Shown here: positions 3,708 to 26,638 of the stretch, in pieces
Position numbering within the stretch: the first letter of the stretch is position 1
Layout of the letters: every line of letters starts with the position of its first letter
NCBI GenBank assembly: GCA_009103225.1
Contig: RHPI01000810.1
Coordinates: forward strand, 1,343,962-1,407,961
Length of the DNA: 64,000 nt
Origin: Chlorokybus atmophyticus
Taxonomy: Eukaryota; Plantae; Mesostigma and Chlorokybus algae
Direction: 5' to 3'
Made by a program: the position numbers and the translations under genes
Notes under the pieces: generated by a model
The model's input: the letters and a program-made list of their open reading frames with translations, nothing else
The model's database searches: none
Told to the model about the DNA's origin: nothing

Positions 3708-6700
3708 CTAGGGTGGTGGTGGTGGCGGTGGTGGTGGTGAGTGTCTGCTCAAGTAGTAGCCGATCAGGTTATGATAAATGGCTTTGGTGTAGTGTGGGCC
3801 CAGGTGCATAACTTCCCGTTGTGCCGCAGTGAGGTGTGTATATGATCTGTTCGCCATGTTCTGATCAAGCAGAAGCAAAAAGTGAGTGAGGCCCGGCTGC
3901 AGAGCACTAAACGCCTCCAAAGTGTTGGCGTACAAAGGGAGCCCATTCTCCGCTCGTCGTTGATTGATGTCACGGAGGTAATGGTGCGCTGTGTTTCGGA
4001 TCAAAACACACAGTGCAGCAGGATCACTGTCCCAAGTGTCTCGTGTCGCTTGATTGTTCCTCTGCGCCCAGGCATTTCGAGCTTGTATGCAGACCGCAAG
4101 CTCTGGAGCCATCAGCTGTTGCCAACCTTGCAAGTACTGTTGTATGCGCTGGGTAGTCTGTGCTCCTCCTTCGCTCAACGAACGTGCCCGCGCGCCGGGA
4201 CTTTCAGCCAGGAAGTCCTCCACCACAACCCGCATCCACTCATCAACCAGCACGCCTTCCATTCCACGCGAATTTGCTGTTTTTCAACGAGCTCCAGGTC
4301 ATCTTCTAAGTTCGTGACCCGCCTATCAAGTTGATTGTTCTCCCTTTGCTGTTCAATGATTTTCTCTTGCAGTTCAGCTTCTGGCGGTAGTGCGGACGTG
4401 GAAGGAATGTCAGCAGCTCCACCACCTGATATTACAGTCTGCAGCATCTGAAGCGTTTTCTCGAGCCTCTGCTGGGTATCTTCGAGCAGCTTCTCTGTAT
4501 GACTGACACGCTGCATGGCTTGAGCAACGTTTTCTTCCGATTCTGCCAGGTCCGCCTGCGCCTTCAGGATTTCCGGGTCGTCCATGGTGGCTGCTCGCTT
4601 GCCGTCTTTGATAAGCTTCTTATTGGACTTCTGGAGTTTGGCATTTTCCTGACGCAGGCGTTTCACCTCCGCATTCAGGGCGTCTGCTTGCCTGCTTGCC
4701 TCTGCTTGCAGCTTGCCCCCAGTCTCTTGCGTTTGAGAGGCCAGCCGCTGGAGTTGTTTGTTGAGAGACTCCACTCTTGCTTCGAGGCGGTTCTTCTCAG
4801 CAGTCAAAGATTCAACCTCTGTTTGCAGCTTGCGCCCAGCCTCTTGCGCCTGTTGAGAGGCCTTCCCGAGTTTTTCATTGAGAGACTGCACTGCTGCACG
4901 GAGCTTCCTCCTGGCCTCCTCGCCTGTGCGCAGGCGCTCGCGCAGGCTCTCATTGTCCTGCCGTAGGCTGCTCGCCTGCAGCTTCTTCCTGGCCTCCTCG
5001 GCTTGGCGCAGGCGCTCACTCAGTTGCAAGTTCTCCTCTCGTAGGCGGTCCGCCTCTTCACGCACCTGCTGAGCGGAGGACTCCTGCTGCTGCTGCTGGC
5101 CGCTGCTCTCCTCCAGCTTCTTCCTGGCCTCCTCGCTTTGGCGCAGCCGCTCAGTCAGGCTTGCATTGTCCTGTCGTAGACGGTTCGCCTCCTCAAGCGC
5201 CTTCTGCTGAGTGGACACCTCCTGCTGCTGCTGGCCGCCGCTCTCCTGCTGCTTCTTCCTGACCTCCTCAGCTTGGCGCAGGCGCTCACTCAGTTCTGCA
5301 TTTTCCTTTTGTAGGCGGTCCGCCTCCTCACGCGCCTGCCGCTGGAGGGAGGCCATTTGCTGAAGCTGGATTTGGAGTTGAGAGGCCTCCTCGGCTTTGC
5401 GCGCAGCGTCACGCGCTTGTTGCGAGGCCTCCTCGGCTTTGCGCAGGCGCTCCTGCAGGCTCTGGATCTCCTCCAAGCGTGCTGCTGCTGATCCTTTGAA
5501 GCTGCTCCTCGCCTGCCGTAGGCTCACATTCTCTGTTTCCAAGCGTTGCCTCTCCGCATTGGTCCACCTCAACTGGTGCTGAAGCGTGTCTTCCTGCTGC
5601 TTCCGAATGGAGTCTTGGTGTGACTGCTGACGCTGAAGTCTTGCATTAAGGGCGTCAACCTCTGCTTGGAGCTTTTGTGCTTGCGCGGAGGGCTGCTGCT
5701 GAAGCTGGTCAAGAAGGTTCCGCTGCTTTTTCCTGGCCTCCTNAGTCAAGAAGGTTCCACTGCTTTTTCCTGGCCTCCTCGGCTGTCGTAGGCGGTCCCT
5801 GTCAGCAGTGGTGGCAACCAACTCTTGCGCTGCATCCTCACGCTGCAAGGCCAGCACCAACTCTTCATCCAACTCGCTGATCCTGTTAAAGGCGGCCTTG
5901 ACGTCATCTTCAATGCGCTTGCAGCGGGTGAGGTGCTCTTTCAAGGCAGGGCGTTCACCGCACAGACGTTCAGCTTCTTCCCTCGCCAGCTCTGAACGCC
6001 GAGCATTGATTTCTCCCAGCTCTTGCAAAGTTTGTTGTAGCTGTTGTACGCGCTGGCTGTCTTCCGCTCTGGCCTGATCCTGCTGTTGCAGCCTTTGTCG
6101 CTCAGCATTGGCTGCATCGAGAGCGGCCTGCAGCTGTGGTATGCGCCCCACGGCCTCCTCTCTTTCCTTCTCCTGCTTTGCAAGAGCCACCTCCAGCTTC
6201 TGTATGCGCCCCCCGGCCTCCTCTCTGGCCTTCTTCTCCTGTTGCAGCAACTCTGCATGCTGTCGGCTAGCCTTGGCTGCTGCTTCAACAGCGGCTGATA
6301 ACTCCGCTGCATGGATGCGCTTGACATCAGCGCTGGCGGATGCAACGGCGTGGGTGCTTGTAGACGCCTCTTCTAGGTGTTGCTGCATCGAAACACCAAG
6401 TTAGAGCACAAACACGAAACAGCGGGGTCATAGACCGAAATGGACAGTGCGGCCTGTGACGCACAAGTAGCCATAGACTGACTAATGCTGACTTTGGCCA
6501 AGGGTTACCTGAAGTTGGGGCACTTGCTGTTGGAGGTTCTGGACAAAGCCTTCAACCAACTTGGCTATGTTGCTGGCATTGGCGACTCCTGAACGTGCAG
6601 CAGCGATACCGTCTTCCAACTTCTTACGAGCATCGTCGTCACCGTCACCGTTGCTGTCATCATCGCTGCTTTCATGATCGCTGGGTTCATCACCACTGCC

Positions 6701-8948
6701 GTCTCCATGATGATCACCTCCAGCAGGTTCATGATGATCACCTCCAGCAGGTTCATCACGACCTCCAGCAGGTTCATCACCTCCAGCAGGTTCATTACCG
6801 CTGACATGCTGACCCTCAGCAGCACCTCCTGGAGTCCCTCCAGCAGTTTGATGGCCACGGTCTATGGCATCCTTCTCTGCGCTTCCTTGTGGTGGCCTGT
6901 CCGGAAACACTAGAGGAACTGAAGGTCGCCCCGAAACCCCTCCCAATGCTGCAAGTGCAGCAGCAGCAGCAGCAGCAGAGGCAAGAGCAGCATCAACAAC
7001 AGCTTGAGAAGGATTGCTAGAGGTAGCCGCAGCACCAGAAGCAGCACTAGAAGGAGTCGGACCGGGAGCTGCAGCAGGAATGGATGGCCAAGGATGGTTG
7101 CACTCCCACTTGTTGATGAGGTATGCGCGCAAGGACTTGTAATTCGCAGCCCATCCTGGATCCTGAAAATGGATGGTCTTCATCTGCTCTTCCAGCCAAA
7201 CTTCTCGCTTCTGTTTCCTCCGATTAGCAATGGCGTTGATGCGTAGCCGGCGTGTCTCCCACTCCGCCTTGTTGCGTTGCTGCAATTGCTTTTGCTCAGC
7301 CTGCCACTGTGCAGTCGTATCTTGGGCGTTTTGAACATTGCTGCGCACTGCAGCTATCTGCTCCTCAGTTAACCAATGTCGCCGGCTTTCATTCAGACCA
7401 TTGCGCACAATGGACAAAATGGTCTTCTCGATTCTTGACTGATAATCCTGCTCCTTCAGCCTGTGCTGATTTGCAGCCCGTGTCACCATGGCGCCCTGAG
7501 CGGCAATCTCTTGAAGGCCTTTGCGAATTGTAGTCTCTGCCTTACGGAACACTTCCTTGGTAAGTTTCTGCGAATCATAACCACCAGTTAGAACACAAAT
7601 TACACACAACTCATTTATGTTTAATAACACAAACATACCCTCTGTTCTTTCTCTTGTTCTATTCTGGAGTCTATCTGTCTTAACAGCAGGAATAGTCTAT
7701 CTAGCACGCGTGTAAGCTCAGCGCACTTGCTTTCAGCTGAGTCAAATATCCCTTTTAAAAGGCGTACAGACGCCTCTCTGACAGTGTGATTGACTGTGTC
7801 GTTCTGGTGACACAAGTGCAGTCTATGAATGCACAATGACATGTACGACCATGCACTGATGAAGCGTTCTCAACACTTACATTCTGTCTTTGATTTCGGG
7901 CGACTTGTGGTCGTTTCAGCACCCTCCATGTGTAGGCGCCTAAAGATTCACCAGCTTGACGCGGTGCAGTGCAAGCGGCGAGGTACGCGCCGTCTTCGAG
8001 CGCGACGCCATGGCGAGCTGCCATCTCTGTTGCCTCCTTGATAAACTTTTCTCTGGCCGCCTCGAAAAAGTACTCCATGACCTGAGGTAAGACGGTGATC
8101 AGCACATTGTTTGCAATGCTGAATGACAAGGTCATAGACCGCACAGCTCTCACAGATGCAGTCTATAACAGCAGGAGACAGTGTCTGGCAGAGCAAGTGA
8201 TGTCTATAGGCACGAGCCACAGGCTGCATATACTCACATGGTCTGTAGGTTGCTCGTCTGGAGGTGGAGGGAAGGGATCGTATTCCATGAGCAGCTCTTC
8301 CCCGGCGGCGATGTCACTCTGACTCCTAACCTCAGCTGCCTGCACCGCAGCCTCATCAACGGAGTCCATGATGTGGCAGTTGGGTTTGTACTGCGTATCG
8401 CGGCTGGAGTTGAGGAAGCCAGCTATGTTCCCATATCGAGGGTGGCCATCGATGACAGGGCTCTGGCGGCGTGGCACGTCCCTGATGACCTGCAGGTGGT
8501 ATCGCTGGTGGTGCAGGTGCTCCTTCTGAGGGAATGTCTTCTGCATCTCCCGGTAGGAGTACCACTTGCCGTCAAAGACCATGATGCGGTCACCCTTCTT
8601 AATAGGCTGGCAGGTGAACAAGCCGAGCCCTGCGCCAGGGATATTGGAAGGCTTGATGACGAACTCTTTGCCAGCAAAATGGAAGAGTTCGCCTATGGGA
8701 ATTGGACCATTCGTCCACAGCTGCCATGGGTCACCGGTCGCTATATGTATGCGCTTGCGGTTGGGAAGCTCTCTGTCACTCTGCAAACAACAAGTGACGG
8801 TAAGTTGGTGTGAATTGTCATAGGCTGCAACTGAGCAGTGCATGCAGCATGGCGCCCATGGCATGTGATCAGCATGCATGATACCATGCGAACAAAGACG
8901 CACCCGCAGATGTTCTTCTGATGGCGGTGGCAACTCCACAGCGTCCAT
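3708..8948 (-). CDS. Large multi-exon SET-domain + acidic/Ala-rich + coiled-coil protein (~1,560 aa); exons 8948-8904, 8780-8238, 8081-7881, 7803-7639, 7567-6509, 6382-3708 (frameshift at ~4280)
   Basis: SET motifs KPSNIPGAGLGLFT, IKKGDRI, IDGHPRYGNIAGFLNSS, NC, DIAAGEELLMEY. All five introns are GT-AG and phase 0, giving one continuous frame. Repeated LRQDNxSLxERLRQxEEARKKL coiled-coil units. The start codon is a best guess. Confidence 0.8.
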
Positions 8949-9160
8949 CCCCGTCTTAGTGAATCGATTGACCTCGGCTGCAGCATTGGTCACAGCCAGT
9001 TCACGGGCCTGCGCTGATCGGTGCACGTTTCGTGTAGGAAGCCAGCTTGTTCAATGGCTGCGAGGTGGCTTGCATTTGCACTGCACTGAATGGCAGCATG
9101 TCCTGTCGTGCTGGTTAGGCTGACCGCATGTACATGTGCTGACCTAGGAATGACTGGTTT

Positions 9161-12100
9161 ATGTTTGCAGTCAACGCTGCTGTACAAGTTGCAGCCAAGC
9201 CTGAAGGACTGACTGAGTCACTGGTTCCGCCCTCTAAGAGTACGCGCACTTCCCGGTGTGATGTCTTCCTCAGCCACAGGGGCCCAGATACAAAGTTACA
9301 CTTCGTTTACTTCCTGAACGATTGCCTGCTTAGGGCGGGTCTGACTGCCTTTGTGGACGAGCTCAATCTCAAGCCAGGTGACCCGGGCTGGGAGACTATC
9401 AAGGAGAACTGCCGTTCCGCTCGCATCCAGCTGCCAGTGCTGTCAAAAGGCTTTGGGGACTCGACCTTCTGCTTGGAAGAGCTTGACATCATGCTGCAAG
9501 CCAACTCTCAATCGGTTATGCCAGTGTTTTACAACGAGGGTGTCATGTCAATGGATGCAGTCCTGGAAGCTATCCGGACTAGCATACGAGGGTGAGTGCC
9601 ATGCTGACGTGAGCAATGCTGAGGTAAAATGTCTGATGGTACTAACAGTCATTTGCGTGGCGCTGTAGGAGAAGCAGCGACGGTGATGGTGCCTACGTCT
9701 CCAACTCAAAAAAATGGCTGCTTTGCTTGGAAAAGGTATCAAAGTGCACTGGATGGAGGCTAGACCAGACAAATGGGTACGTCAAGTACTAGCACCTACA
9801 CAACCGGTTGATGGCCAGCGTTATGTATGCCAAGGCAAGGTGATGACGGCATGGTTTTTGCAGGAATTCATTGGCTCTTGCTCGGCAAGTGGTCAAGGGC
9901 ATTCTGGACAAGCTGGGCTTACCTGCCATGTATGTAGCTGAGTATCCAGTGGACGTTGACCGCCGAGTGAACACTTTCTGCGTTGACCTACTCCGCACTG
10001 TGCGATCCAAAGGAAGCAGAGTAGGTGTGCTAGGCCTTTGGGGCGAGGATGGTGTTGGAAAAACAACGTTAGTCAAGGCCATGTACAACCAGCTGAAAAG
10101 GGATTTCGTTGACAGCTGCTGCTTTATCAGCGTTGGCCAAGACACAAGCGTTGGCCACATGCAAAGTCTACAGCAACAGGTCCTCGCAGATCTCTGTGGC
10201 GACAGAACTGAGAAGAAGCCTATTGACGCGGGGAAGGCTCTGTTGCAGACCCGTCTGCAGAACAGGCGCTGCCTGCTTGTCGTAGACGATATCTGGACAA
10301 TGGATCAGGTTGAAGCTCTTCTGGTTCCAGGTCTGACCTTGGCAGCTGGAAGTTACGTGCTGTTGATGTCACGCGACAGTCAGCTATTCAAAAGTGTAAG
10401 CTTGCCGGGGTCAGCAACATTGATGAGGAGAGCTGAACGACTAGAAGCTATACAAGCTATAGAACTCTTCTGCGGGTATGCCTTTGGTTCACCAGATGTT
10501 CCCAAGGTCATGACGCGTCTCGTTCAGGACGTTGCCATGGCGTGCAACGGCCTGCCCAGCCTCCTCAAGCGCTTCGGTCAAAGTCTGCGGGGTGAAACAG
10601 CAGAGAAAGCTTGGATGGAGGTGTTAAACAAGCTAAGAAGACCAGATCGGTTGCAGCTGAACACGCAGGATGAGAACCCAAAGCATCCCGCTGCAAGTGT
10701 TGCAGTCTGGGAACACAACACTCAATCGCTTGTGAAGCTGATGCAAGGACCTAGCGGCCCCGCGCGCTCCTGGGCAGCACGTGCCCTGAGCAGTATGTCT
10801 AAGACCGAAGTGAGCCAGAACAAGAAGAACAGTACCCACGTAACGAGATCGCTGGTTAAGCTTATGGGAGATGGTAACCCTGCAATTGCACTTGGCAAAC
10901 CGGCACGAGACCACGGAAGCAAGCACAACCTCCAAGGCCATGGGGCGTTCGCGGGAGACCTGAACAAGGACAAAGACCCAGTAGCATGCCATGCAGCCGA
11001 TACTTTGAGGCAGTTACTTGTTGCTAATCAAGACAGCATCGTGGTATGTACTTTCTCTGTGTGCTGTACAACCAGACATGGCTGTGATTTGACAACACCT
11101 TCTTTGGATGTTCTTGCCAGGCGGAAGCAAGGAAGGCTGGTGCTGTCCCTGCGCTTGTAAGGTTGCTGGTCACAAACAGATCGGAGACCTCAGCAGCGGC
11201 TGCTGGGGCTTTAGCAAACATGATGGGTGACCAGCAAAGCCAGGTACCGGTCGATATGTGTTTGCTACCACTTCTTCTAAGTGTTTGAACAACTTGGGCT
11301 GTACTTGTGCAACCGCCGCCTTCGCATTCAACACTGTCTCTTTGGTTGAGACTTGTTGCATTGGCAAGGGTCCCCAGCACATGCCATGGCAAGGTCGCAG
11401 CTGTCAGCAGTAGTTTGACAATACAACTGCCTGCAGCTCTATCATGCTGGCCTATGGGCAATGCATCTGTATGCTGTTATGTGTATCGCAGTCAGCAGGG
11501 CATCACCACAAGGTGCACACTTCTCACCCGTGTACCGGCGGCAGGATGAATTTGTGATGAACGGGGGCGTCACTCCAATGCTGAAGCAGCTGGATGTTGG
11601 AGACCGTCAAGCACGTGCAGAATCGGCCCGCCTGCTGCGCAACCTCACCAGAGACGCGGATCACAAGAGGAGCGCTGAAGCACAGGTATTGGTTGCTAAG
11701 CATTGCACGCCTGCTGCAGGAAACTATTACACTTGTGCCTGTCTCGTTCATCAAGTGCCTAATGTGCAGGCAGTTATGGAGGCGTACAAAACGGCCATAA
11801 TGAGGGCTGCGCAGCGGTTGGAGACGGGTTCAGTGGAAGAGAAGGATTTTGCAGCAGATGTGCTGGCAAACATTACGACGGACAGCAGGAAGGATTCGGT
11901 ACGACAGTGCTTGGCCAGCATCATTCACGTCTCTGTAACGCTTCCAAAGTGCTGCATATGTCACTCACCGATTTCTCTGTAGCTCTTTTGGGACAATAGC
12001 AAGCAGCCAAGAATAGCCACAATACTAACGTCTACACTTGCTTGCTGTGCCACAGAGGGCCTTGCCACAGAGGACCAAAAGACAAGCAGGAACAAAAGGA

Positions 12101-17630: not shown

Positions 17631-18531
17631 TGTTGCTCTTATCATGACCATGGCAATACTTACACAGTCCTTCTTCTCAGTTTGCACAAACCTCTCAGTA
17701 AGTCTATGAGCTGGAGAACGGTTGCGGTGTATGCGGCATTGATTAATGAAGCAATCATCTGGCAAGTCGTCTCAACTTGCCTCGCAACTCTGTGCCCTGA
17801 TTTGCCAGCACCTCTGCACACCCATCAAATCTGCTTCACACTTGGTTCAACCGCGTGTTGACTTAGCAGTGATGAGTTACTAACTCATCAATAACTACTA
17901 GTAGTAGTTTGTGAGTGATTTCACAAATTGCTAACTCATGTGCCTCAAGTTTGACTGAAACCAGCACCATGCAGTTCCTAACAGCACAATAATACAACAA
18001 GCTGACCGAACAGTTTTAAGCTAGGTATTAGACCAGTTTATATATATATATATATACACAAGTGCGCTTGTGTATAGATTTGTGTAAATAAGTGTATGCT
18101 CGTGCGTGTGACAAGGACGTGTAGTATACCAAGAGTGTGTGCGTAGATGTACAAGGAAAAAAGCACATAACCATAGCAGGTTATAGCGTTGCGCATGCAC
18201 GAGAAAGCAAGAGAAGTTTGGGGAAGCGAAAAGGAAATCGTGACAAGGGGGAGACTTTTCTCAATGTCTGCCGGTCCAGATACATGTACAAAATTGATCG
18301 AGCTCATCATCAGTCAGGTTATCTTTATAGGTGGCGGCAGCATTGCCGTCTTCGCCGTGAATGGATGAAGTGAAGGCGTCATCATTGCTGGTAGGCAAGT
18401 GGCTACCGCAACCTCAACCTCAATCTTACCAGCACTGCTGCAGTACAAGTTAGCCCCTACTCCGCCGCCTTCCCAATCCTGCCTCTGATTTGCTCATTCC
18501 CCTCACACTTGCACGGGTTCAGCCATTCTGT

Positions 18532-18552
18532 CACACACACACACACACACAC

Positions 18553-18628
<76 letters not shown>

Positions 18629-18750
18629 AGGTATATATGTATATATACGCATATACGTATATATACATATGTATATATGTGTATATATGTGTACACACGT
18701 ACATATACGTATATATGTCCATATACACATGTATATATATATATATGTAT
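18532..18750. repeat. Compound microsatellite, (CA)n then TA-rich
   Basis: Seen directly. Confidence 0.97.
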
Positions 18751-18926
18751 TCTTCTTGTGATTCTTGTTTATATAAAAGTGTGATTGAGGCGGACATGCA
18801 TGCTGGGTTGCAAGAATGTCAGCGATATTGCGGGGTGTGGTAGAGTGAATGCGTCACTGCGTGCAAGTTTGTGTAACATGTTAGCCAGTGAAGGTGAGAG
18901 TATATGCGCGTGCATGTGTGTGTTTG

Positions 18927-18928
<2 letters not shown>

Positions 18929-19003
<75 letters not shown>

Positions 19004-19007
19004 NGAG
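18929..19007. repeat. (GA)n microsatellite
   Basis: Seen directly; one N at 19004. Confidence 0.97.
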
Positions 19008-20128
19008 TGTGCAGTTGGAGAACAGCTTGCGCGTAAAGCTCTGTGTGGATGATGTGGGTAGCGCTTGCTGAGCTGTAAGTTTACTATTATGTCTGCAATA
19101 AGTCTGTGTGATGTTCGAGTGTGCATCATTTTCGAGCACATGCTACTACTTGTCGTGCGTGGGTGTACTGCTGTTGTCCTGTTGCCAACAGTTAGTTCCG
19201 TAAGCAATAGACAGCACCCTTACACACTTCCATGCTCTCTGCTGTGAAGTGCAGATGTGCTGTGTTTGCATTGCGCACGTATCATGTTACAACATTTAAC
19301 ATTGACATTTCACTCGCACTCATGGATGGAGCAACACGCAGTGAGCCTCCCAACCGTAGGCTATGCAACCTTTGCATAGCAGCGCTGGGGACAGGTGTAA
19401 TTATAAATTTATAATGTGCAGCTTTCATGATGAACTCCATTAGCATTCTCGCTCCTAAATTAAGTGCGCCCAGTACAGCTTTGGCTGATTACTCTCAGGT
19501 TGGTTGCCATGATTGCGAGCTGCTGTTGATGTGGCAATTGCACACGCGATATAAAAGCGAAGTAAATTTATGCCATGTGGACCATTGCTCGGTGGGGAAA
19601 GGTGTATTTACCCTGACACTTGAGTGTTGTATTCCAAGTTGGCAGAAGGAGAGCCCTGGAGCAAACACTTGCGATGAATGAAATTCAAGATAATTCCCTA
19701 CGTTTGCTTGCAGGATATTGTACTTGCGTGTTCATGGCTGAGAACTATTTTCCCTACTAGATTTCTTGCCTTCATGGAGCACATGACCAGAGCGTGGCAA
19801 CATTTCAGATAGTATCGCCAAGTTGTTAATTCCTTTAATGTTGCTACCTAGTAATCGTGCTTCCATGTGAATGGATACCAAGCATCACCTCTGCAACAAC
19901 ACAGTAGACCGCTAGTATCGGCCCACACAGTACTACCTCCTGCAAGAGTCGTACTGACTGCTGCAAATATACACTGTGCCACGTGGAGACTGGCAGAAAA
20001 GGCGTAAATCTCGCTTAATAAGGCTTGCATTGCAATAAGCTTGGATTGGAATAAGCTTCACGGGACTTGTGCCTACCAACCTTTCGCAGATGCCGCCGCC
20101 TTCTTTTTTTTTGGGGGGGGGGGGGGGG

Positions 20129-20286
20129 NNNNNNNNNNNNNNNNNNNNNNNNNNNNNNNNNNNNNNNNNNNNNNNNNNNNNNNNNNNNNNNNNNNNNNNN
20201 NNNNNNNNNNNNNNNNNNNNNNNNNNNNNNNNNNNNNNNNNNNNNNNNNNNNNNNNNNNNNNNNNNNNNNNNNNNNNNNNNNNNNN
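20129..20286. other. Assembly gap (N run) flanked by poly-G
   Basis: N characters. Confidence 0.99.
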
Positions 20287-21878
20287 GGGGGGCGGCGAGG
20301 GCTATGTACGGTCGTTCTTAACATACCCGCAGTCTGCTGCAAGCGCTGCTGCTTTGGCCTTTCTAGCAGGGGGCTTGTGCTTGCAATGCCTTGCTGTTTG
20401 CAGCGTCTCACAGCTGCTCAGTGTTGGTGCCTTTCATACCTAATATTCTCATGGGGACTCTCTTCTGTTGCCTTGGTTGCGCTCAACCAGACCTACCCAA
20501 AGCTTGTTTACTAAAACCATGGCCACCTAGGTAGGGCACTTGGTTTGTCAAGAAAGCTTGTCCATCTAAAACACCTTCACCGCTCGCGGAACAGCATGTT
20601 GGTGCCGCACAAATATAACTACGTGTCCACTTACACTAATCTGCACGTGTGCGGTGCCTGCGCTGACGCATGCACGCGCTCATATGCAAATACCTACATG
20701 CAATACCGTTGCTTCCTTTCATCATTGAGTAGTCTTGACAACTCGTCCAGACTACTCAACCGCCACATCAGATGTGGCAGACATGTTGCGCAGTGCTGAC
20801 TGTCATGACATCAAGCGCACAACGCGCAAGTCTTGAACCTCTGAGGTTGTTGCATTGGTGTTCATTGCGCATATGTACAGGCAGCATGGTATGGTGTATA
20901 ATAGCACGGAGTTGCCGGCCGCAACGACATCAACACACATGTAAGCAAGGTAAGTAATTGGTAAGAGCAGTGCGGGGAGCAGTGTTACTGCCTGCATGTA
21001 TGTCAACTAGTCAGCACCTCTCACACCGGACATTGGCAGGCATTGACTGTGCATGATGCTGATGGGACATTGACATGGCATGTGCATGCTGCATGATGGC
21101 AGCGGACCGGTGTGCATAGCACTCTTGCTACTGCGGCGCCGGCCTTTGGGACGGCCTAGATGCCAATGTGACATGACCAACGTATCGTATGAGCCAGGCC
21201 ACGCAGCATGGATGAAGCCATGTGGCCGCAGAGAGGCATATGTTCGTGCACACAGCGTGCAGCAGCGGCGGGTCCAAGTTTCAGCGTCTTTGTCGTCGTC
21301 GCCCTTGTGGTCATGGATGCCGACGCCTACATCGACAAGCAAGCCTAACCTCTGCTTCTCTCTTCTCCTCTCCTCTCCTCTACACTCTGCAGGTGGTTGA
21401 GTGCTGCCATCTGTCTGCTTGCTGCTATACACGTCCACCTGTTGCTGCTTGAGGGTCTTACTTGGGCTAGTTGAGTTGGAGGAAGCTGTGCATAGCTCTG
21501 CCTTGGCCCCCATGTAATCGCATGACTGCTTGCTTGTCTTTGCTCTATTGCTACCTACTTCGGGGTTTACCTCGTGCAACCTGTGTGTTATATTGTCATT
21601 GCTGTCATCATGCTGCACTGCAAATGTGACATGCGCCCATATGCACCTTTCATGCAGACATTGCAGCATGCTTGGTTGCACTATGACAGTAACTCGTTGA
21701 CGGCAAAATGCGGCCTGTATCAGTATATCTGTAACAAGCTGCGCAAAAGACACTATGTACATATGCTCTCGTTTCAAAACTGACATGCAATCCGCCTCAA
21801 GGCATTGAGGTGTTCAAGGACACAATGCCACAGCACTGCTATGTATCTGAATGCCTGCAAGGATGCGGGCGGTTGCAA

Positions 21879-22720
21879 TTAGACCAGAGATTTTTGCTGT
21901 TCATCTAAAGCATGAGAGGTGGAAGACACGGTGGGTTCTGTAGTCCCTCTGTACGCCTCACGATGCATATCTTCCAGATACTTATAGCGCTCAGGTCGGT
22001 TATCGCGCTCTAGGTAGTGGCCGCTGTCACCAATGTTGATGAAGCCACCGTGATAGTAGTTAGCAATGTCAACCGGCTCCAACAGTTTGCGGTAGTTGTC
22101 ACCTCGACTGAGCCAAAGGCGGCCCTTTGCGAAGACTTTTGCCGGCAGCGCCTCGTCTTTTGCAAGCTCTGTTGCCCAGTCCCAAAAGCTTGCGAGGAGG
22201 CGGCGAGCGCTGTTGACACGACTGGCGTCATCATCACCTGTGGTGCTTTCGAGTGCTTCTGAAAAAGCAGCGTAGTAGCGGGCTTGGTGCTTGCGTTTGT
22301 AGCTTGATACAGTTGACATTGCATCTATGTGCTCCTTGGTGTACCTCTCGTGCAACTCCCAAGCTGCCTGCAACTGCAATCTGCACACATACACACATAC
22401 ACAACTTGCCTGTAGCTTGCATTGTCAAAATAAATTGACAAGCGTTGTTATGCTGTGCAGCGCAATCAACATTGACACAATGGCAATGAGAGTGCGGAGT
22501 ACATATGCTGGCATGGAACCTTCAGCAACAGACACATTATATACCTGTGCGCGCACACACCTATGACGTACCTGTGCTGGTCGTCATCACGAAATGCCTG
22601 GGCCTGTCGCAAAGCTTTGGCAGCGATGTAATTGCTGACAATGCTTGCGACGGCACCGAGAATGCCTGTAACAGCACCAATGGCACCGAGCGCAATAGCC
22701 AAAACCTCTGCGCTCCCCAT
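21879..22720 (-). CDS. Hydrophobic N-terminal helix + EDS1/PAD4-type EP-domain segment, 216 aa; exons 22720-22572 and 22380-21879
   Basis: The phase-2 GT-AG intron 22571-22381 joins DQHR|LQLQ in frame. Ordered motifs YK..YYAAF..RVNSARRLLASFWD..ALP..W..YRKLLEPVDIANYY..SGHYLERDNRPERY match my recollection of the PAD4/EDS1 EP domain (YYDFF..VNMSRIRLAKFWD..ELP..EPLDIANFY..GGHYLEGNRPKRY). The N-terminus is LAIALGAIGAVTGILGAVASIVSNYIAA. No GxSxG lipase exon was found nearby. Confidence 0.85.
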
Positions 22721-25078
22721 CAAAAACTGCCGTGCAGCAACAAGTTTGGAATTGCATGTCAGGCGCACAAACAACTTGCCAATGCACAGAACACTGTTGA
22801 CATTGATTGCAATAGCGTTGCAGACTGCCTGTAACCACGCATGGGCATGTTGACAATCACAAGCATGTGCAATGGCAAGCTCGGCCGCACCAACTTAGCA
22901 CTGTACTGCATGAAAAATATGGTACTACGCCGCTGCTTGCGTGCAAAGCAATGGTGCATTTACACGGCGCTTACCAATGCAAATTGTCCGGCGGTTAAGG
23001 CTTATTTCCAACTTCAGGACAACCAAAGGCAGTACACTTGGCCTGCATTATCTCTCAAGCGTGAGCACGCAAGACAGTGCACTGGTACTGGTGAAAAATC
23101 ATCTGCCATGCTGCAGCCTCACGCATACATGACAAGCACGTACTGGCTTTCTATTGTTGCCAGATTCGCACCAAGACGCTTGACGCATGCGTACATCCAA
23201 CCGCCTTGACAACTTGCTAGAGCTTGCGGCTATGCCTGTCAAGCGCAACGCGCTTGCATCCAGGTCATTGCATATTGCCTCAACAATGAAAGTCGACGTC
23301 TGAACACACAACAACTCTGTTATACAGTTCACACATGAGCAGCAGCTGCAATTGCGTAAATGCTCAGCCAAGCGCGCCGGCGAAAGGCTGAGCTCGTTGT
23401 CAATGCTCAACGCACGACGGTGCACAGCAAACCACCACCACTAACAACAACAACGTCATCAGAAGGCGGCGACAAGCACACTGCAGTGCGCATACACACT
23501 GCTAGCAAGCAACCCGTAGTAGAAAGCACGATTATTACAGCTGCAATGTATGTGCTTCCAACCAGAGATTGCTTGCTCAGCTTTACGTAAGAGGCCGTCA
23601 CTAACGTGCCAATAGCTCAACAGCAGTGTTCCGACAAGCCTACGATGGGTTCCTTGCCTCCAGCACGACAATGTGCTACACATGCGTGCGTAGGTAGTCA
23701 CACGTCCCAGCCCTCACCCCACGCAAGCTACAGCATGGCAGCGATCTGTTGGCACATGTCCAGCATGCATGGGCATGCTCATGCAAATGACAGGCTCCGC
23801 TCACTCTTCCGCAGCACGGTAGACTGTGACAGGCCTGCACAGGCTTGCGCATTCACCCCCCTCAGCCGTCCACCATCAGCTGGGAGCGTCTTGAAGGAGG
23901 CAGCACCGCGCCGGCGCATTTTCTTGCACACAAGCATGCACCGGGAACTCAACGTCTTCCTGTAACTTACGTCGACATGCGTAGAACTGCTGTTAAGCTG
24001 CTAACTAATAGGCCTGAGCTTGTGAAGCTACAGTGATGCTCGCCGCAAGTTGTACTCATCGCCTCGATATAGAGCCTCGTTTGGGAAAGCGCCCCACATC
24101 TCATGCTCGTTATGAGACCCTTGCACTCCTCGGGAGGCTGCCTGGTGCGGGCCTATTCGCACTTGGCGACTGCGTAATTACTGTAACAAGAGTACTTGAC
24201 TCAGATTTAGACAGCTGTTATATCTTCAGCACATACACATGCTATTGTATGCAATCCTTGCAAGTTCAACACATTGTAGCAAATCAATAAAGTAATTGGT
24301 GTATCGAAAAAATGAAGCTGCTGATGATTGGATGGGGATCAGTAGATTACCCTGAGAGTGTGCACGCATGTTGCATATCTTTTGCTCTTTTGCTTTAGGG
24401 GCCGCACTATTTACCATGTGCATAGGGTATAAGTCATTCAGCACATCATGCAATGCTTAGCATGCAACACACTGTGCATTGCTAGCAGCTAGCACATGCA
24501 GCCAACATAAGCAAATAGCCAATACCACACATGTACTTAAACACACCCCGGCACCCAAGACTACTCAACTAGTGCTTCCAAGCGCTGCTATGTGCAGTGG
24601 ATAGTGAGCAGCGGGTGGTAGTTGGGACGAAGAGGTACTGTAACCAATCTGGCGAATACATAGCAGAGATGGAGGCAGACTGTCAATCGTTGGGTGCAGT
24701 GGAGGCAGAGGGAGCAAGGACGGTGCAGAGCAATGCAGTGCAGTGAAGTGGTGTGGGTGTGTTGTGGATGTTTCAGCTATGCCCCCGACCCCTCCCACTT
24801 TCATCCTCCCCGTCAGGTTGTGAGGCTTTTGCAAGTGTGACGGCCGTGTGAGTTGATGAAGCGGGTTTTGCACATTAATGCTCTATAAATAAATAAATTA
24901 AAATGTGTTATGCACATGTTTCGTCAAAATATGTCAACAGTTCAGTCTCAGGCCATTATGCCACATGCAATCATTGGTGACGAAAAGTAAAGGACACATA
25001 AATGAATAATAGCAGTAGCTGACCAGACATGCATGAGGGCAAACTAGCTGCTCCCCTCACGCGCTTACCTGAGCACAA

Positions 25079-26638
25079 CGTCGCAAAATGTTTCCGTGCC
25101 GGCCGACTAAATATTGGCAACGGCCGTGCACCTGAGGATACTCATTTAGACTGTCGACCTTCAGTCCACCGGCGATCTCGATACAGGGACCTGAGCATAA
25201 CGGCCGTCACCATTAATTGACGGCCGTTTGCATAAAGAGACTGACCCTAATTAATAGGTACCTGTCAGGTACTCAACAGTTAAGCAAAGGGGACTTGACC
25301 TAACCAACACGTAACTGACCGGTACCTATCAGTTAGGTACCGGCGACTGTACGCTAACCGAGCGAAATTGTCAGGTACCTTAAGGTACCTACCATTAATG
25401 ATGTGTACCTTCAAAGGTACTTGCTGGTACCGCTCGGTCATAATTAGGTGTCACACATGATTGTCGTCATTAGCTGTGCAAAAATACGTGGCAAATAATA
25501 AAAAACAAAAAAATAATAAATACAATGTAATATATTGAGCTACTACTACTACTGCTAGTACAACTAGACTACCACTACTGCTACCACTACCACTACTGCT
25601 ACTACTACCTTAGGTACTACTGCTAGTACTACCCTTGTACTGAGCTGCGGCTCCTGCACCGCCCGCTCCAGCTCCGCCGCCGCCGTTCCTTCTCCGCCCC
25701 CGCTGGCGCCGCCTGGCCTGTTCTGGCCTAGCCCGGCCTAGCCTGGCCTGGCCTGGCCGCCCTAAGGCAAGGAGGGTAGTTAGATGGCATGCGGTGTTGC
25801 GCGTAGTACAACGTCAGACAGCAACCAAGCTCACCTACTGTTAGTCGCCGCCGCCGCCGCCCACAACGCTCTGTTCAACTTGAAGCCGTTGAGCGTTTGA
25901 ATAACTTGGGCAGCCCAAGTTATCCAGACGTGTTGTCGAAACATGACTCGCAACGGCATTATCGTATTATACAATGGTACGAAAGCACCATTGTCGCAAT
26001 AACACTATCGTACCATATCAATGGTACGATAGTGCCATTACGACAATGGCACTGTTCGTACCATTCACATAGTACGGCGGCTGCATTGTACCAGGATCTC
26101 GACTTGCCGACCGGTACCACCGTCCCGACTTGCCGACCTTTAGGGACCGGTGGTCACTTGCTTATCATACTTGACATACAATAAGTAGGTCGCCGCCGCG
26201 CTAAGTTCACGACCGGCGATCGGCCGTCACTTCATAAACGCGGTAAGGTCACCTGATAGGGACTAACGGTGACTGGCTTGCGAAAGTAGGCAGGCCGTCG
26301 CGCATACTTTTTTGACGGTCAGGGTACGACCTACGGTCGGCCGTCACTGTGTGTGACCAAAACGTGACTTATCTGCTATACAGATTGGTCGCCATCGCGC
26401 AAATGGGACGACCGACAATCAGCCGTCACCTGAAAGTGCGGTGTTGTCGTCACAGGCAAGCCACTGTCGATTGTACTTATCGGTCGACCGCTTGCCGTTG
26501 GTATATGTTGCTTAATAGTAACGGCCGTCCTTAAAAGTCCCTTTATGGACCAATCCGTTACGTCAGGTAGGGTCAGGCAGGGTCAGGCACCCGTCAGTCC
26601 CTCAGTCCCTTGTCAGTCACCGTGTAAAATTTGCGACG
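25079..26638. mobile_element. Non-autonomous DNA transposon with short TIRs (CGTCGCAAA...TTTGCGACG), copy 1
   Basis: Collinear with 56257-58124 and has the same termini. Many GGTACC, CGGCCG and GTCAG subterminal motifs plus (CTA)n and (GCC)n tracts. Flanks AA/CA, so the TSD is imperfect here. Confidence 0.8.

Follow-up and report, generated by a model that had tools for sequence, protein, structure and literature searches.

The EP domain is known from EDS1, PAD4 and SAG101 of seed plants, in which it follows a lipase-like domain, and the well-studied members of this family are all dedicated receptors of TIR-derived signals. They form exclusive heterodimers, which bind pRib-AMP/ADP or ADPr-ATP produced by TIR enzymes and recruit ADR1 or NRG1. 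Bacteria possess transmembrane (TM) sensor-effectors of nucleotide-signalling defence, such as ThsA of type II Thoeris (TM segment and Macro domain), Cap15 and the TM effectors of Pycsar. The accessible literature describes the EP domain as confined to the EDS1 family of seed plants, and how TIR and TIR-type nucleotide-binding leucine-rich repeat receptor (NLR) signalling proceeds in algae, bryophytes and ferns, all of which lack EDS1, is an open question. Here, we analyzed a 64,000-nucleotide stretch of DNA, hereafter the window, from Chlorokybus atmophyticus, an early-diverging streptophyte alga (contig RHPI01000810.1, positions 1,343,962 to 1,407,961). One gene of the window encodes P0001, a real and expressed protein that consists of an N-terminal hydrophobic helix and a short EP core, and that belongs to a family, referred to below as TM-EP, whose EP cores are repeatedly fused to, or encoded near, TIR domains. 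The first-pass annotation of this DNA had anticipated that EP-like fragments outside seed plants might have been noted before, and a 2026 preprint does mention unspecified 'short EP-like sequences' in green algae; public databases also already tag TM-EP proteins with PF18117. In the accessible literature we found neither the TM-EP architecture described nor its gymnosperm members and TIR neighbourhoods.

P0001 is encoded by a spliced, lipase-less gene

Translation and splice sites placed the P0001 gene at 21879–22720 of the window, on the minus strand, with two coding exons for 216 amino acids, exactly as the first-pass annotation had it. The spliced product is identical in sequence to the public C. 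atmophyticus model jgi/Chlat1/627 (Chrsp103S00004). The features of the gene are as follows.

21701..21878, minus strand: 3' untranslated region (UTR), its limit given by the longest RNA contig (X1, covering 21701–22380)
21879..22380, minus strand: coding exon 2, from the last nucleotide of the Arg50 codon to Val216 and the stop; 167 codons; EP core
22381..22571, minus strand: coding intron, 191 nucleotides, GT..AG, phase 2; seen as CT..AC on the plus strand in X1 and X2 RNA contigs
22572..22720, minus strand: coding exon 1, Met1 to His49 and the first two nucleotides of the Arg50 codon; 49 codons; hydrophobic helix and charged linker
22619..22705, minus strand: region coding for the predicted membrane helix, residues 6–34 (hydropathy, AlphaFold2 model)
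22721..23299, minus strand: 5'UTR region, exons 22721–22726, 22975–23041 and 23143–23299, introns 22727–22974 and 23042–23142

The ATG is at 22720 and the stop codon at 21881–21879; the donor (CAG/GTACGT) of the coding intron is at 22572/22571 and its acceptor at 22381/22380, joining the exons in frame. For transcript evidence, RNA runs of two studies (X1 and X2) were used in the form of Logan contigs, which were aligned to positions 20700–26600 of the window. An X1 contig of 1068 nucleotides covers 21701–22380, 22572–22726, 22975–23041 and 23143–23299, and an X2 contig of 664 nucleotides covers 21867–22380 and 22572–22720. The splice joint 22380/22572 is present in contigs of both studies, showing that P0001 is expressed and spliced, and all pieces skipped in the contigs are CT..AC on the plus strand, i.e. 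GT..AG introns of a minus-strand transcript.

A possible splice acceptor just before the ATG had been pointed out, through which an upstream lipase exon might be joined. This acceptor is real, lying 6 nucleotides upstream of the ATG at the end of intron 22727–22974, and it leads only to non-coding 5'UTR exons. Translation of the assembled cDNAs revealed an in-frame stop 12 codons 5' of the ATG in 3 of 3 observed 5' variants, and the remaining frames of these variants were full of stops. Since the stop precedes the ATG in every variant, P0001 lacks a lipase exon at the RNA level, and an upstream lipase exon was ruled out by the RNA contigs together with the translated variants. A lipase hidden Markov model (HMM) built from 17 canonical EDS1-family proteins gave no match over the 64-kb window, and a Pfam scan of P0001 returned EDS1_EP only and no lipase-like domain, so that the description of the protein as lipase-less stands.

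The 5'UTR (22721–23911, minus strand) is long, with two or three introns and alternative forms: an extra exon at 23805–23911 appears in one RNA contig, one contig is unspliced across 23143–23833, and another joins 23299 to 23805. Depending on the transcript form it contains 5–15 upstream ATGs, which may serve translational control.

P0001 contains a short form of the EP domain

The Pfam model EDS1_EP (PF18117) matched P0001 with 62.6 bits and an E-value of 5.3e-17 (gathering cut-off, 23.1 bits) over profile positions 8–124 of 211. When P0001 was compared with all PDB chain sequences by phmmer, EDS1, PAD4 and SAG101 were the sole matches at E ≤ 0.001, the best being rice EDS1 (8zf0_B, E 1.2e-14), and Arabidopsis PAD4 was matched with E 3.8e-11. 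The motifs EPVDIANYY and GHYL..NRPERY, by which the domain had first been recognized, are both present.

The AlphaFold2 model computed from a 50-sequence alignment (predicted local distance difference test, pLDDT, 95.3; predicted template-modelling score, pTM, 0.81) consists of a 92-residue helix at 3–94 (pLDDT 84–97) followed by helices at 100–124, 138–160, 180–192 and 205–215. In a Foldseek search of the PDB with this model, the top 24 matches were all EDS1, PAD4 or SAG101 (best E 2e-7, template-modelling score 0.67 by query), and beyond EDS1-family chains there was no match below E 0.9. VIA-align likewise gave Z scores of 16–19 to the EP domains of EDS1, PAD4 and SAG101, versus 7 for the best unrelated chain; residues 50–216 superposed on AtPAD4 294–462 with a root-mean-square deviation (rmsd) of 1.6 Å over 149 residues at 30% identity, and residues 47–216 superposed on AtEDS1 363–559. 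Because seed-plant sequences in the alignment might steer the model, the prediction was repeated from 36 sequences of the lipase-less clade described below, and the fold and its confidence, as well as the order of the PDB matches, stayed the same. The match is far beyond chance: approximately residues 50–216 of P0001 are a true homologue of the EP domain in a short form.

P0001 corresponds to roughly the first 70% of the EP domain and lacks its C-terminal quarter to third; in the alignment, seed-plant EP sequences run approximately 70–90 residues past the end of P0001. P0001 thus does not have a full EP domain, and the earlier term 'stand-alone' falls short as well, the protein being a member of a sizeable family.

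Another candidate relative, the bacterial family DUF4760 (PF15956), came from structure and language-model searches. Foldseek against AlphaFold Database clusters gave weak matches (E 4e-3 to 5e-2, template-modelling score approximately 0.5), and 48 of the 100 ESM-Atlas clusters nearest to P0001 were DUF4760. The Pfam DUF4760 model was touched by 1 of 41 lipase-less members (E 0.043), and none of 10 family members matched it on rescanning. With negligible sequence support and no common motif, DUF4760 was rejected as a relative and kept as a weak lead only.

P0001 belongs to a family on the far side of the deepest split from seed-plant EDS1

A full phmmer search through 1.84 billion representative proteins yielded 138 matches, and a maximum-likelihood tree of the common EP core was built from scan matches and four added sequences (42 lipase-less and 59 seed-plant tips). 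The 42 lipase-less sequences were separated from the 59 seed-plant sequences with a Shimodaira–Hasegawa-like (SH-like) support of 0.993 and a branch of 0.97 substitutions per site, placing P0001 opposite to the seed-plant EDS1-type sequences across the deepest split of the tree. The lipase motif GHSxG was found in none of the 42, and every sequence with the motif fell in the 59-member group. The mean patristic distance was 3.63 in the lipase-less group versus 2.42 in the seed-plant group, indicating that the former is more diverse. All of the 41 lipase-less members scanned matched EDS1_EP, over the first 110–125 profile positions only.

The homologue survey that the first-pass annotation had proposed thus returned relatives in Chlorokybus, a chlorophyte, gymnosperms and metagenomic eukaryotes. 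P0001 groups with other Chlorokybus paralogues, of which eight are named here (P0002, P0003, P0004, P0005, P0009, P0012, P0013 and probably P0007); this tree position and the existence of the paralogues rule out seed-plant contamination, about which the annotation had warned. The family also occurs in the chlorophyte Elliptochloris bilobata (KAK9825429.1), in Ginkgo (Gb_28202) and in Cryptomeria (SUGI_0443670). Other members come from metagenomes or Logan assemblies, with eukaryote-like contigs (fragmented open reading frames (ORFs), approximately 50% GC); the exception is one gene-dense set that is very rich in AT. The core motif [VL]EP[IL]DIA[ND]Y yielded no confirmed relative in IMG/VR or in 185,579 prokaryotic species (one genome each), and by these searches the family appears to be eukaryotic only. 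A word search derived from the alignment added, among the matches listed, the Cryptomeria protein and one Logan protein, and a metagenome scan gave 58 loci that were all of seed-plant type, most with lipase-like exons on the same contig, and no new TM-EP loci. When 8 family members were scanned with PADLOC and NCBIfam models, nothing meaningful was returned, and no defence-effector profile was matched.

The gymnosperm TM-EP proteins P0109 (Ginkgo Gb_28202), P0163 (Cryptomeria SUGI_0443670) and P0164 are 227–232 amino acids long and occur alongside canonical EDS1 and PAD4. They share 59–61% mutual identity, which suggests that the architecture has been held since Ginkgo and conifers parted. In Cryptomeria, the gene consists of one ORF of 699 bp, located on a chromosome record of 781 Mb.

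The N-terminal helix is conserved in hydrophobicity and position

The N-terminal hydrophobic Gly/Ala helix that had been described as fused to the EP domain corresponds to residues 6–34 of P0001. This segment is uncharged and contains the most hydrophobic 19-residue window of the protein (Kyte-Doolittle 2.33); it is rich in Gly and Ala, carries seven small-xxx-small motifs within its 29 residues, and is too long for the core of a signal peptide. In the AlphaFold2 model it runs as a single continuous helix into the EP bundle. Its N-terminal side is acidic (E5) and the 15 residues on its C-terminal side (35–49) are net neutral. Most relatives have a net positive charge on the C-terminal side and a net negative or neutral one on the N-terminal side, from which, by the positive-inside rule, the EP core would be cytosolic.

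Such a helix is present in most lipase-less members, and its distance from the EP core is nearly constant. The spacing between the helix end and EPxDIA, measurable in 22 of 25 helix-bearing members checked, was 104–105 amino acids in 8, 104–129 in 18 and 94–136 in 20 of the 22. In the general layout of the family, the hydrophobic helix is followed by EPxDIA typically 104–119 amino acids on, and the core ends soon after RPxxY and one further helix; EPVDIA of P0001 lies 117 residues past the helix end and fits this layout. Given the near-fixed spacing, the helix and its rigid link to the EP core are conserved features of the family. Regarding the Gly/Ala zipper, small-xxx-small motifs number 0 in P0006 and P0032 and 1–2 in several other relatives. 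Since the zipper is absent from many relatives, only the membrane anchor is conserved across the family, in its hydrophobicity and position.

The ligand-contact region is retained with partly conserved residues

In seed plants, the residues described as lining the EP cavity or contacting the ligand are K440/441, K478 and R493 of EDS1 (Bhandari et al. 2019, PMC6377607), and EDS1 H476, PAD4 R314 and F387, and SAG101 M304, K371, N380, M384 and L438 (Jia et al., bioRxiv 10.1101/2022.05.02.490369). Structural superposition placed all of these within the part of the EP domain that P0001 retains. Residue equivalences were taken from HMMER alignments: R493, R490 and K440 of EDS1 correspond to R181, R178 and K124 of P0001; K441, H476, K478 and F419 of EDS1 to D125, F163, N165 and S103; and K379 and F387 of PAD4 to R137 and N145. 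The R493 equivalent is kept in P0001 and its closest paralogues, and W116, W139, E151, Y172, R178 and P179 (P0001 numbering) are invariant or nearly so across the clade. The pocket residues are thus only partly conserved, and ligand binding by P0001 is something we infer rather than state.

EP cores are fused to TIR domains and lie near TIR genes

Pfam scans of the Chlorokybus paralogues identified three fusion architectures: SEFIR/TIR_2 and EP in P0005 (Chlat1/626, on the same scaffold as P0001), LRR, TIR_2/SEFIR and EP in P0009, and helix-EP-TIR-EP in P0013. Gene neighbourhoods were then compared for every family member on a long contig, with no other criterion, which gave a small sample of nine independent loci; gene calls at the metagenomic loci are prokaryote-style ORFs with approximate exon structures. 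A TIR or TIR-NB-ARC gene was found within approximately 11 kb of the EP gene in 6 of the 9, four of them head-to-head.

L001 (P0011): TIR-NB-ARC(-LRR) gene 1.5 kb away, head-to-head
L007 (P0037): TIR-NB-ARC gene approximately 0.7 kb away, head-to-head
L011 (P0023): TIR_2 gene 47 bp away, divergent (head-to-head), on a gene-dense contig of 22% GC
L008 (P0029): TIR gene 4 kb away, divergent (head-to-head)
L009 (P0082): EP ORF within an EP-TIR gene collinear with P0013, fusion
Window, 9143..11157, plus strand: TIR-NB-ARC gene, convergent with the P0001 gene at approximately 10 kb (Pfam TIR/TIR_2 E 3e-13, NB-ARC E 7e-27)
L006 (P0042), L010 (P0153) and L003-5 (P0016): no TIR or NB-ARC feature found

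The EP proteins of the four head-to-head pairs belong to different subclades of the tree, and the pairs therefore count as independent observations. For a gene family that makes up no more than a few percent of a genome, 6 of 9 loci would, by general expectation, be far more than chance should give. TIR domains adjoining or fused to EP cores retain the catalytic-Glu motif. Translation of 9143–11157 showed two TIR motifs of plant type, DVFLSHRG and FCLEEL, of which FCLEEL includes the putative catalytic Glu, and the encoded TIR-NB-ARC protein is a candidate signalling partner of P0001. The proposed link to TIR signalling has thus gained independent support from the TIR/SEFIR-EP fusions and from the TIR or TIR-NB-ARC neighbours at unrelated loci. 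No called neighbour was found within 10 kb of the Cryptomeria TM-EP gene.

According to the text of a 2026 preprint, Chlorokybus TIR domains were assayed in Nicotiana, where all EDS1-dependent TIRs required the catalytic glutamate for cell death, and one Ginkgo and two Physcomitrium TIRs alone are named as EDS1-independent. By exclusion from that text, we infer that the Chlorokybus TIR signal can be read by an angiosperm EP pocket.

Other features of the window and of related loci

A second, apparently decayed TM-EP copy lies approximately 1.8 kb past the 3' end of the P0001 gene and abuts a run of N at approximately 20100–20350. The weak tblastn matches are to the helix region and the C-terminal part of P0002; judged from the ORF translation, the helix is broken up, with SISIL giving way to P, K and D residues.

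19352..20101, plus strand: degenerate TM-EP remnant, P0002-like (tblastn of P0002 residues 44–122 and 222–285, E 3e-4 and 1e-4)

Just past the 3' end of P0001, a spliced plus-strand transcript was seen at 20873–21420 (joints 20947 to 21038 and 20947 to 21196, both GT..AG); its 5' part extends beyond the aligned stretch, and the overlapping ORF has no Pfam match. Long (CA)n/(TG)n and (GA)n microsatellites occupy 18490–19050, with a single N at approximately 19010.

On a second Chlorokybus scaffold, P0009 (Chrsp114S01646) and the TM-EP protein P0012 (Chrsp114S01653) are seven gene models apart, paralleling the 626/627 pair. At L011 (Logan SRR14803103, 8496–10092), the TIR_2 gene and a 186-amino-acid TM-EP gene form a cassette-like divergent pair on an apparently intron-free contig, for which an AT-rich protist or a giant virus is a conceivable source. 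Of L009 (ENA ERZ22854972, 51% GC), the stretches of note are 5091–8414 (minus strand) and 9753–11374 (plus strand). The contig contains ORFs collinear with the canonical seed-plant EDS1 P0024, matching its residues 15–147, 153–205, 239–334 and 449–525 and showing the lipase-like motifs GHSLGG, DIVPR and FGTY. After these comes a short EP core of algal type, whose closest grouping is with the Elliptochloris sequence, so that L009 apparently has an EDS1-like lipase and EP layout outside seed plants; it is head-to-head with the EP-TIR gene collinear with Chlorokybus P0013.

Discussion

The evidence above can be read as follows. The P0001 helix is predicted to be a signal-anchor that would hold the protein in the membrane with the EP core facing the cytosol, the latter being assumed because TIR proteins are cytosolic. 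The EP core would probably pair with a second one, either of its own kind via the small-residue helix or that of a TIR/SEFIR-EP fusion. The paired cores would sense what activated TIR enzymes produce, most likely a nucleotide derived from NAD, as EDS1 heterodimers do, and turn this perception into a membrane-proximal response, whose output could be recruitment of another protein or direct membrane damage. The helix would thereby take the place of the EDS1 lipase-like domain in localisation and dimerisation. Our confidence falls along these steps, from the anchor with a cytosolic EP core through TIR signalling, EP pairing and nucleotide binding to membrane damage; this last step is the weakest, since the zipper is not shared by the whole family and the defence-effector profiles gave no match. 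That P0001 acts in TIR signalling we consider probable, and that it binds a TIR-made nucleotide can be put forward tentatively. Taken as a whole, the reading that P0001 resides in a membrane and serves TIR signalling as an EP-type receptor or adaptor seems to us only just probable.

Several observations weigh against this reading. The cavity or function-critical residues H476, K478, F419 and K441 of EDS1 are replaced in P0001, the R493 position is taken by various residues in the clade (among them Y, H, W and Q), and the residues conserved in the clade (W116, W139, E151, Y172, R178, P179) may be purely structural. P0001 ends at the position of AtPAD4 462 of 541 and AtEDS1 559 of 623, so that the last 79 and 64 residues, respectively, are absent. 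As for the helix, membrane insertion is a prediction from hydropathy and the AlphaFold2 monomer, and the positive-inside rule leaves the topology of P0001 unfixed, its own C-terminal flank being net neutral. The TIR linkage is weak at P0001 itself (approximately 10 kb, convergent, with an assembly gap between), 3 of the 9 loci (L006, L010 and L003-5) have no TIR, and algal TIR and NB-ARC families can be large, which weakens the argument from proximity.

Among other explanations, the one that survives best regards the EP core as a protein-interaction module without a small-molecule ligand, a scaffold that tethers TIR/SEFIR-EP proteins or NB-ARC receptors to the membrane. The poor conservation of pocket-lining residues across the clade would fit it, seed-plant EP domains also contact proteins (partner EP domains and helper NLRs), and the paralogues with EP cores beside TIR/SEFIR domains would be natural partners. 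On the other hand, the whole known ligand-contact region lies in the retained part of the domain, the key arginine equivalent to R493 is kept in P0001 and its nearest paralogues, and the catalytic-Glu motif kept in the adjoining or fused TIR domains points to an enzymatic signal, which makes a pure scaffold rather unlikely.

We regard as distinctly unlikely that P0001 is itself an executioner, in which a TIR signal would cause EP oligomers to form and the Gly/Ala zipper helices to open a pore or disrupt the membrane, like the TM effectors of bacterial TIR, CBASS and Pycsar systems. Such a role would account for the small-xxx-small motifs of the helix and for the single rigid helix that joins membrane segment and EP bundle in the AlphaFold2 model, and the head-to-head TIR and TM-EP cassettes, especially that of L011 (47 bp), resemble bacterial sensor-effector pairs. 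However, many relatives have a weak zipper or none, one helix per subunit would demand a high-order assembly, and PADLOC defence effectors gave no match.

It is more improbable still that P0001 is a membrane helical-bundle protein unrelated to TIR immunity, its proximity to TIR genes being coincidental. The loci without TIR neighbours, the Cryptomeria gene with no called neighbour and the weak fold and language-model likeness to bacterial DUF4760 membrane proteins would agree with this, but three separate fusion architectures of TIR/SEFIR with the EP core, four head-to-head TIR pairs in distinct subclades and the dedication of all well-studied homologues to TIR-signal reception do not. Finally, an artefact, namely a mis-modelled lipase-EP fragment, a pseudogene or seed-plant contamination, has a negligible chance: the suspected acceptor before the ATG does exist, but spliced RNA contigs from two studies, an in-frame stop upstream in every 5' variant, the missing lipase HMM match in the window, the intact frame, the high-confidence model and the grouping of P0001 with Chlorokybus paralogues apart from seed plants all stand against it.

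If P0001 and its relatives are membrane-resident receptors or adaptors of TIR signals, a TIR (or TIR-NB-ARC) protein and a TM-EP protein might form an ancient two-component immune module of eukaryotes. The anchored EP core would then be the original TIR-nucleotide receptor in the green lineage and some other microbial eukaryotes, and the seed-plant EDS1 family would be derived from it by exchange of the helix for a lipase-like dimerisation domain and addition of the C-terminal helices for helper-NLR recruitment. This scenario is doubtful, and the metagenomic locus L009 may record an intermediate toward the EDS1 layout. Irrespective of it, the P0001 family provides a robust EP-core homologue in a streptophyte alga, a plausible ancestor of the EDS1 EP domain, and proteins that can be cloned as candidates for the TIR-signal receptor still missing outside seed plants, so that the reading of TIR signals outside seed plants becomes testable. 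The presence of TM-EP proteins beside canonical EDS1 in gymnosperms suggests an unstudied second EP branch within seed plants.

Comparison with known systems

The closest described relatives are the EP domains of EDS1, PAD4 and SAG101 (PF18117; 4NFU, 7XEY, 7XJP, 8ZF0), which form a homologous helical bundle (rmsd 1.6–2.6 Å over approximately 150–160 residues, 24–30% identity) and share with P0001 the signature FWD..LP..W..YR.LVEP.DIANYY..G.Y...RP.RY. Like the EDS1 family, the P0001 family is associated with TIR-domain proteins, and P0001 keeps the equivalents of EDS1 R493 and K440. Unlike EDS1, PAD4 and SAG101, P0001 has no lipase-like domain and hence no LLIF dimer interface, carrying a membrane helix instead; its EP domain is incomplete, the equivalents of H476, K478 and F419 are changed, and it lies on the far side of a long, well-supported branch. 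Without a lipase-like domain, with an incomplete EP domain and across the deepest split of the tree, P0001 falls outside the EDS1 family as it is defined.

The bacterial TM sensor-effectors are comparable in layout, by analogy, in that the P0001 family likewise has an N-terminal membrane helix, a candidate ligand-sensing domain and an adjoining TIR gene. They differ in showing no sequence or profile similarity to it (no PADLOC match), and the P0001 family uses an EP bundle, not a Macro, SAVED or CARF domain. DUF4760 proteins resemble P0001 in having an N-terminal helix and a small helical bundle of similar size, with no common motif.

Further counterparts are found within the family itself. 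Chlorokybus P0005, P0009 and P0013 have the same short EP core as P0001 (38–43% identity) and share its clade and genome; they carry a putative signal generator in the same chain, whereas P0001 consists of the helix and EP core only. The gymnosperm proteins Gb_28202 and SUGI_0443670, of 228–232 amino acids, have both the architecture and the clade of P0001, with approximately 31–32% identity over the BLASTP-aligned 41–44% of the protein.

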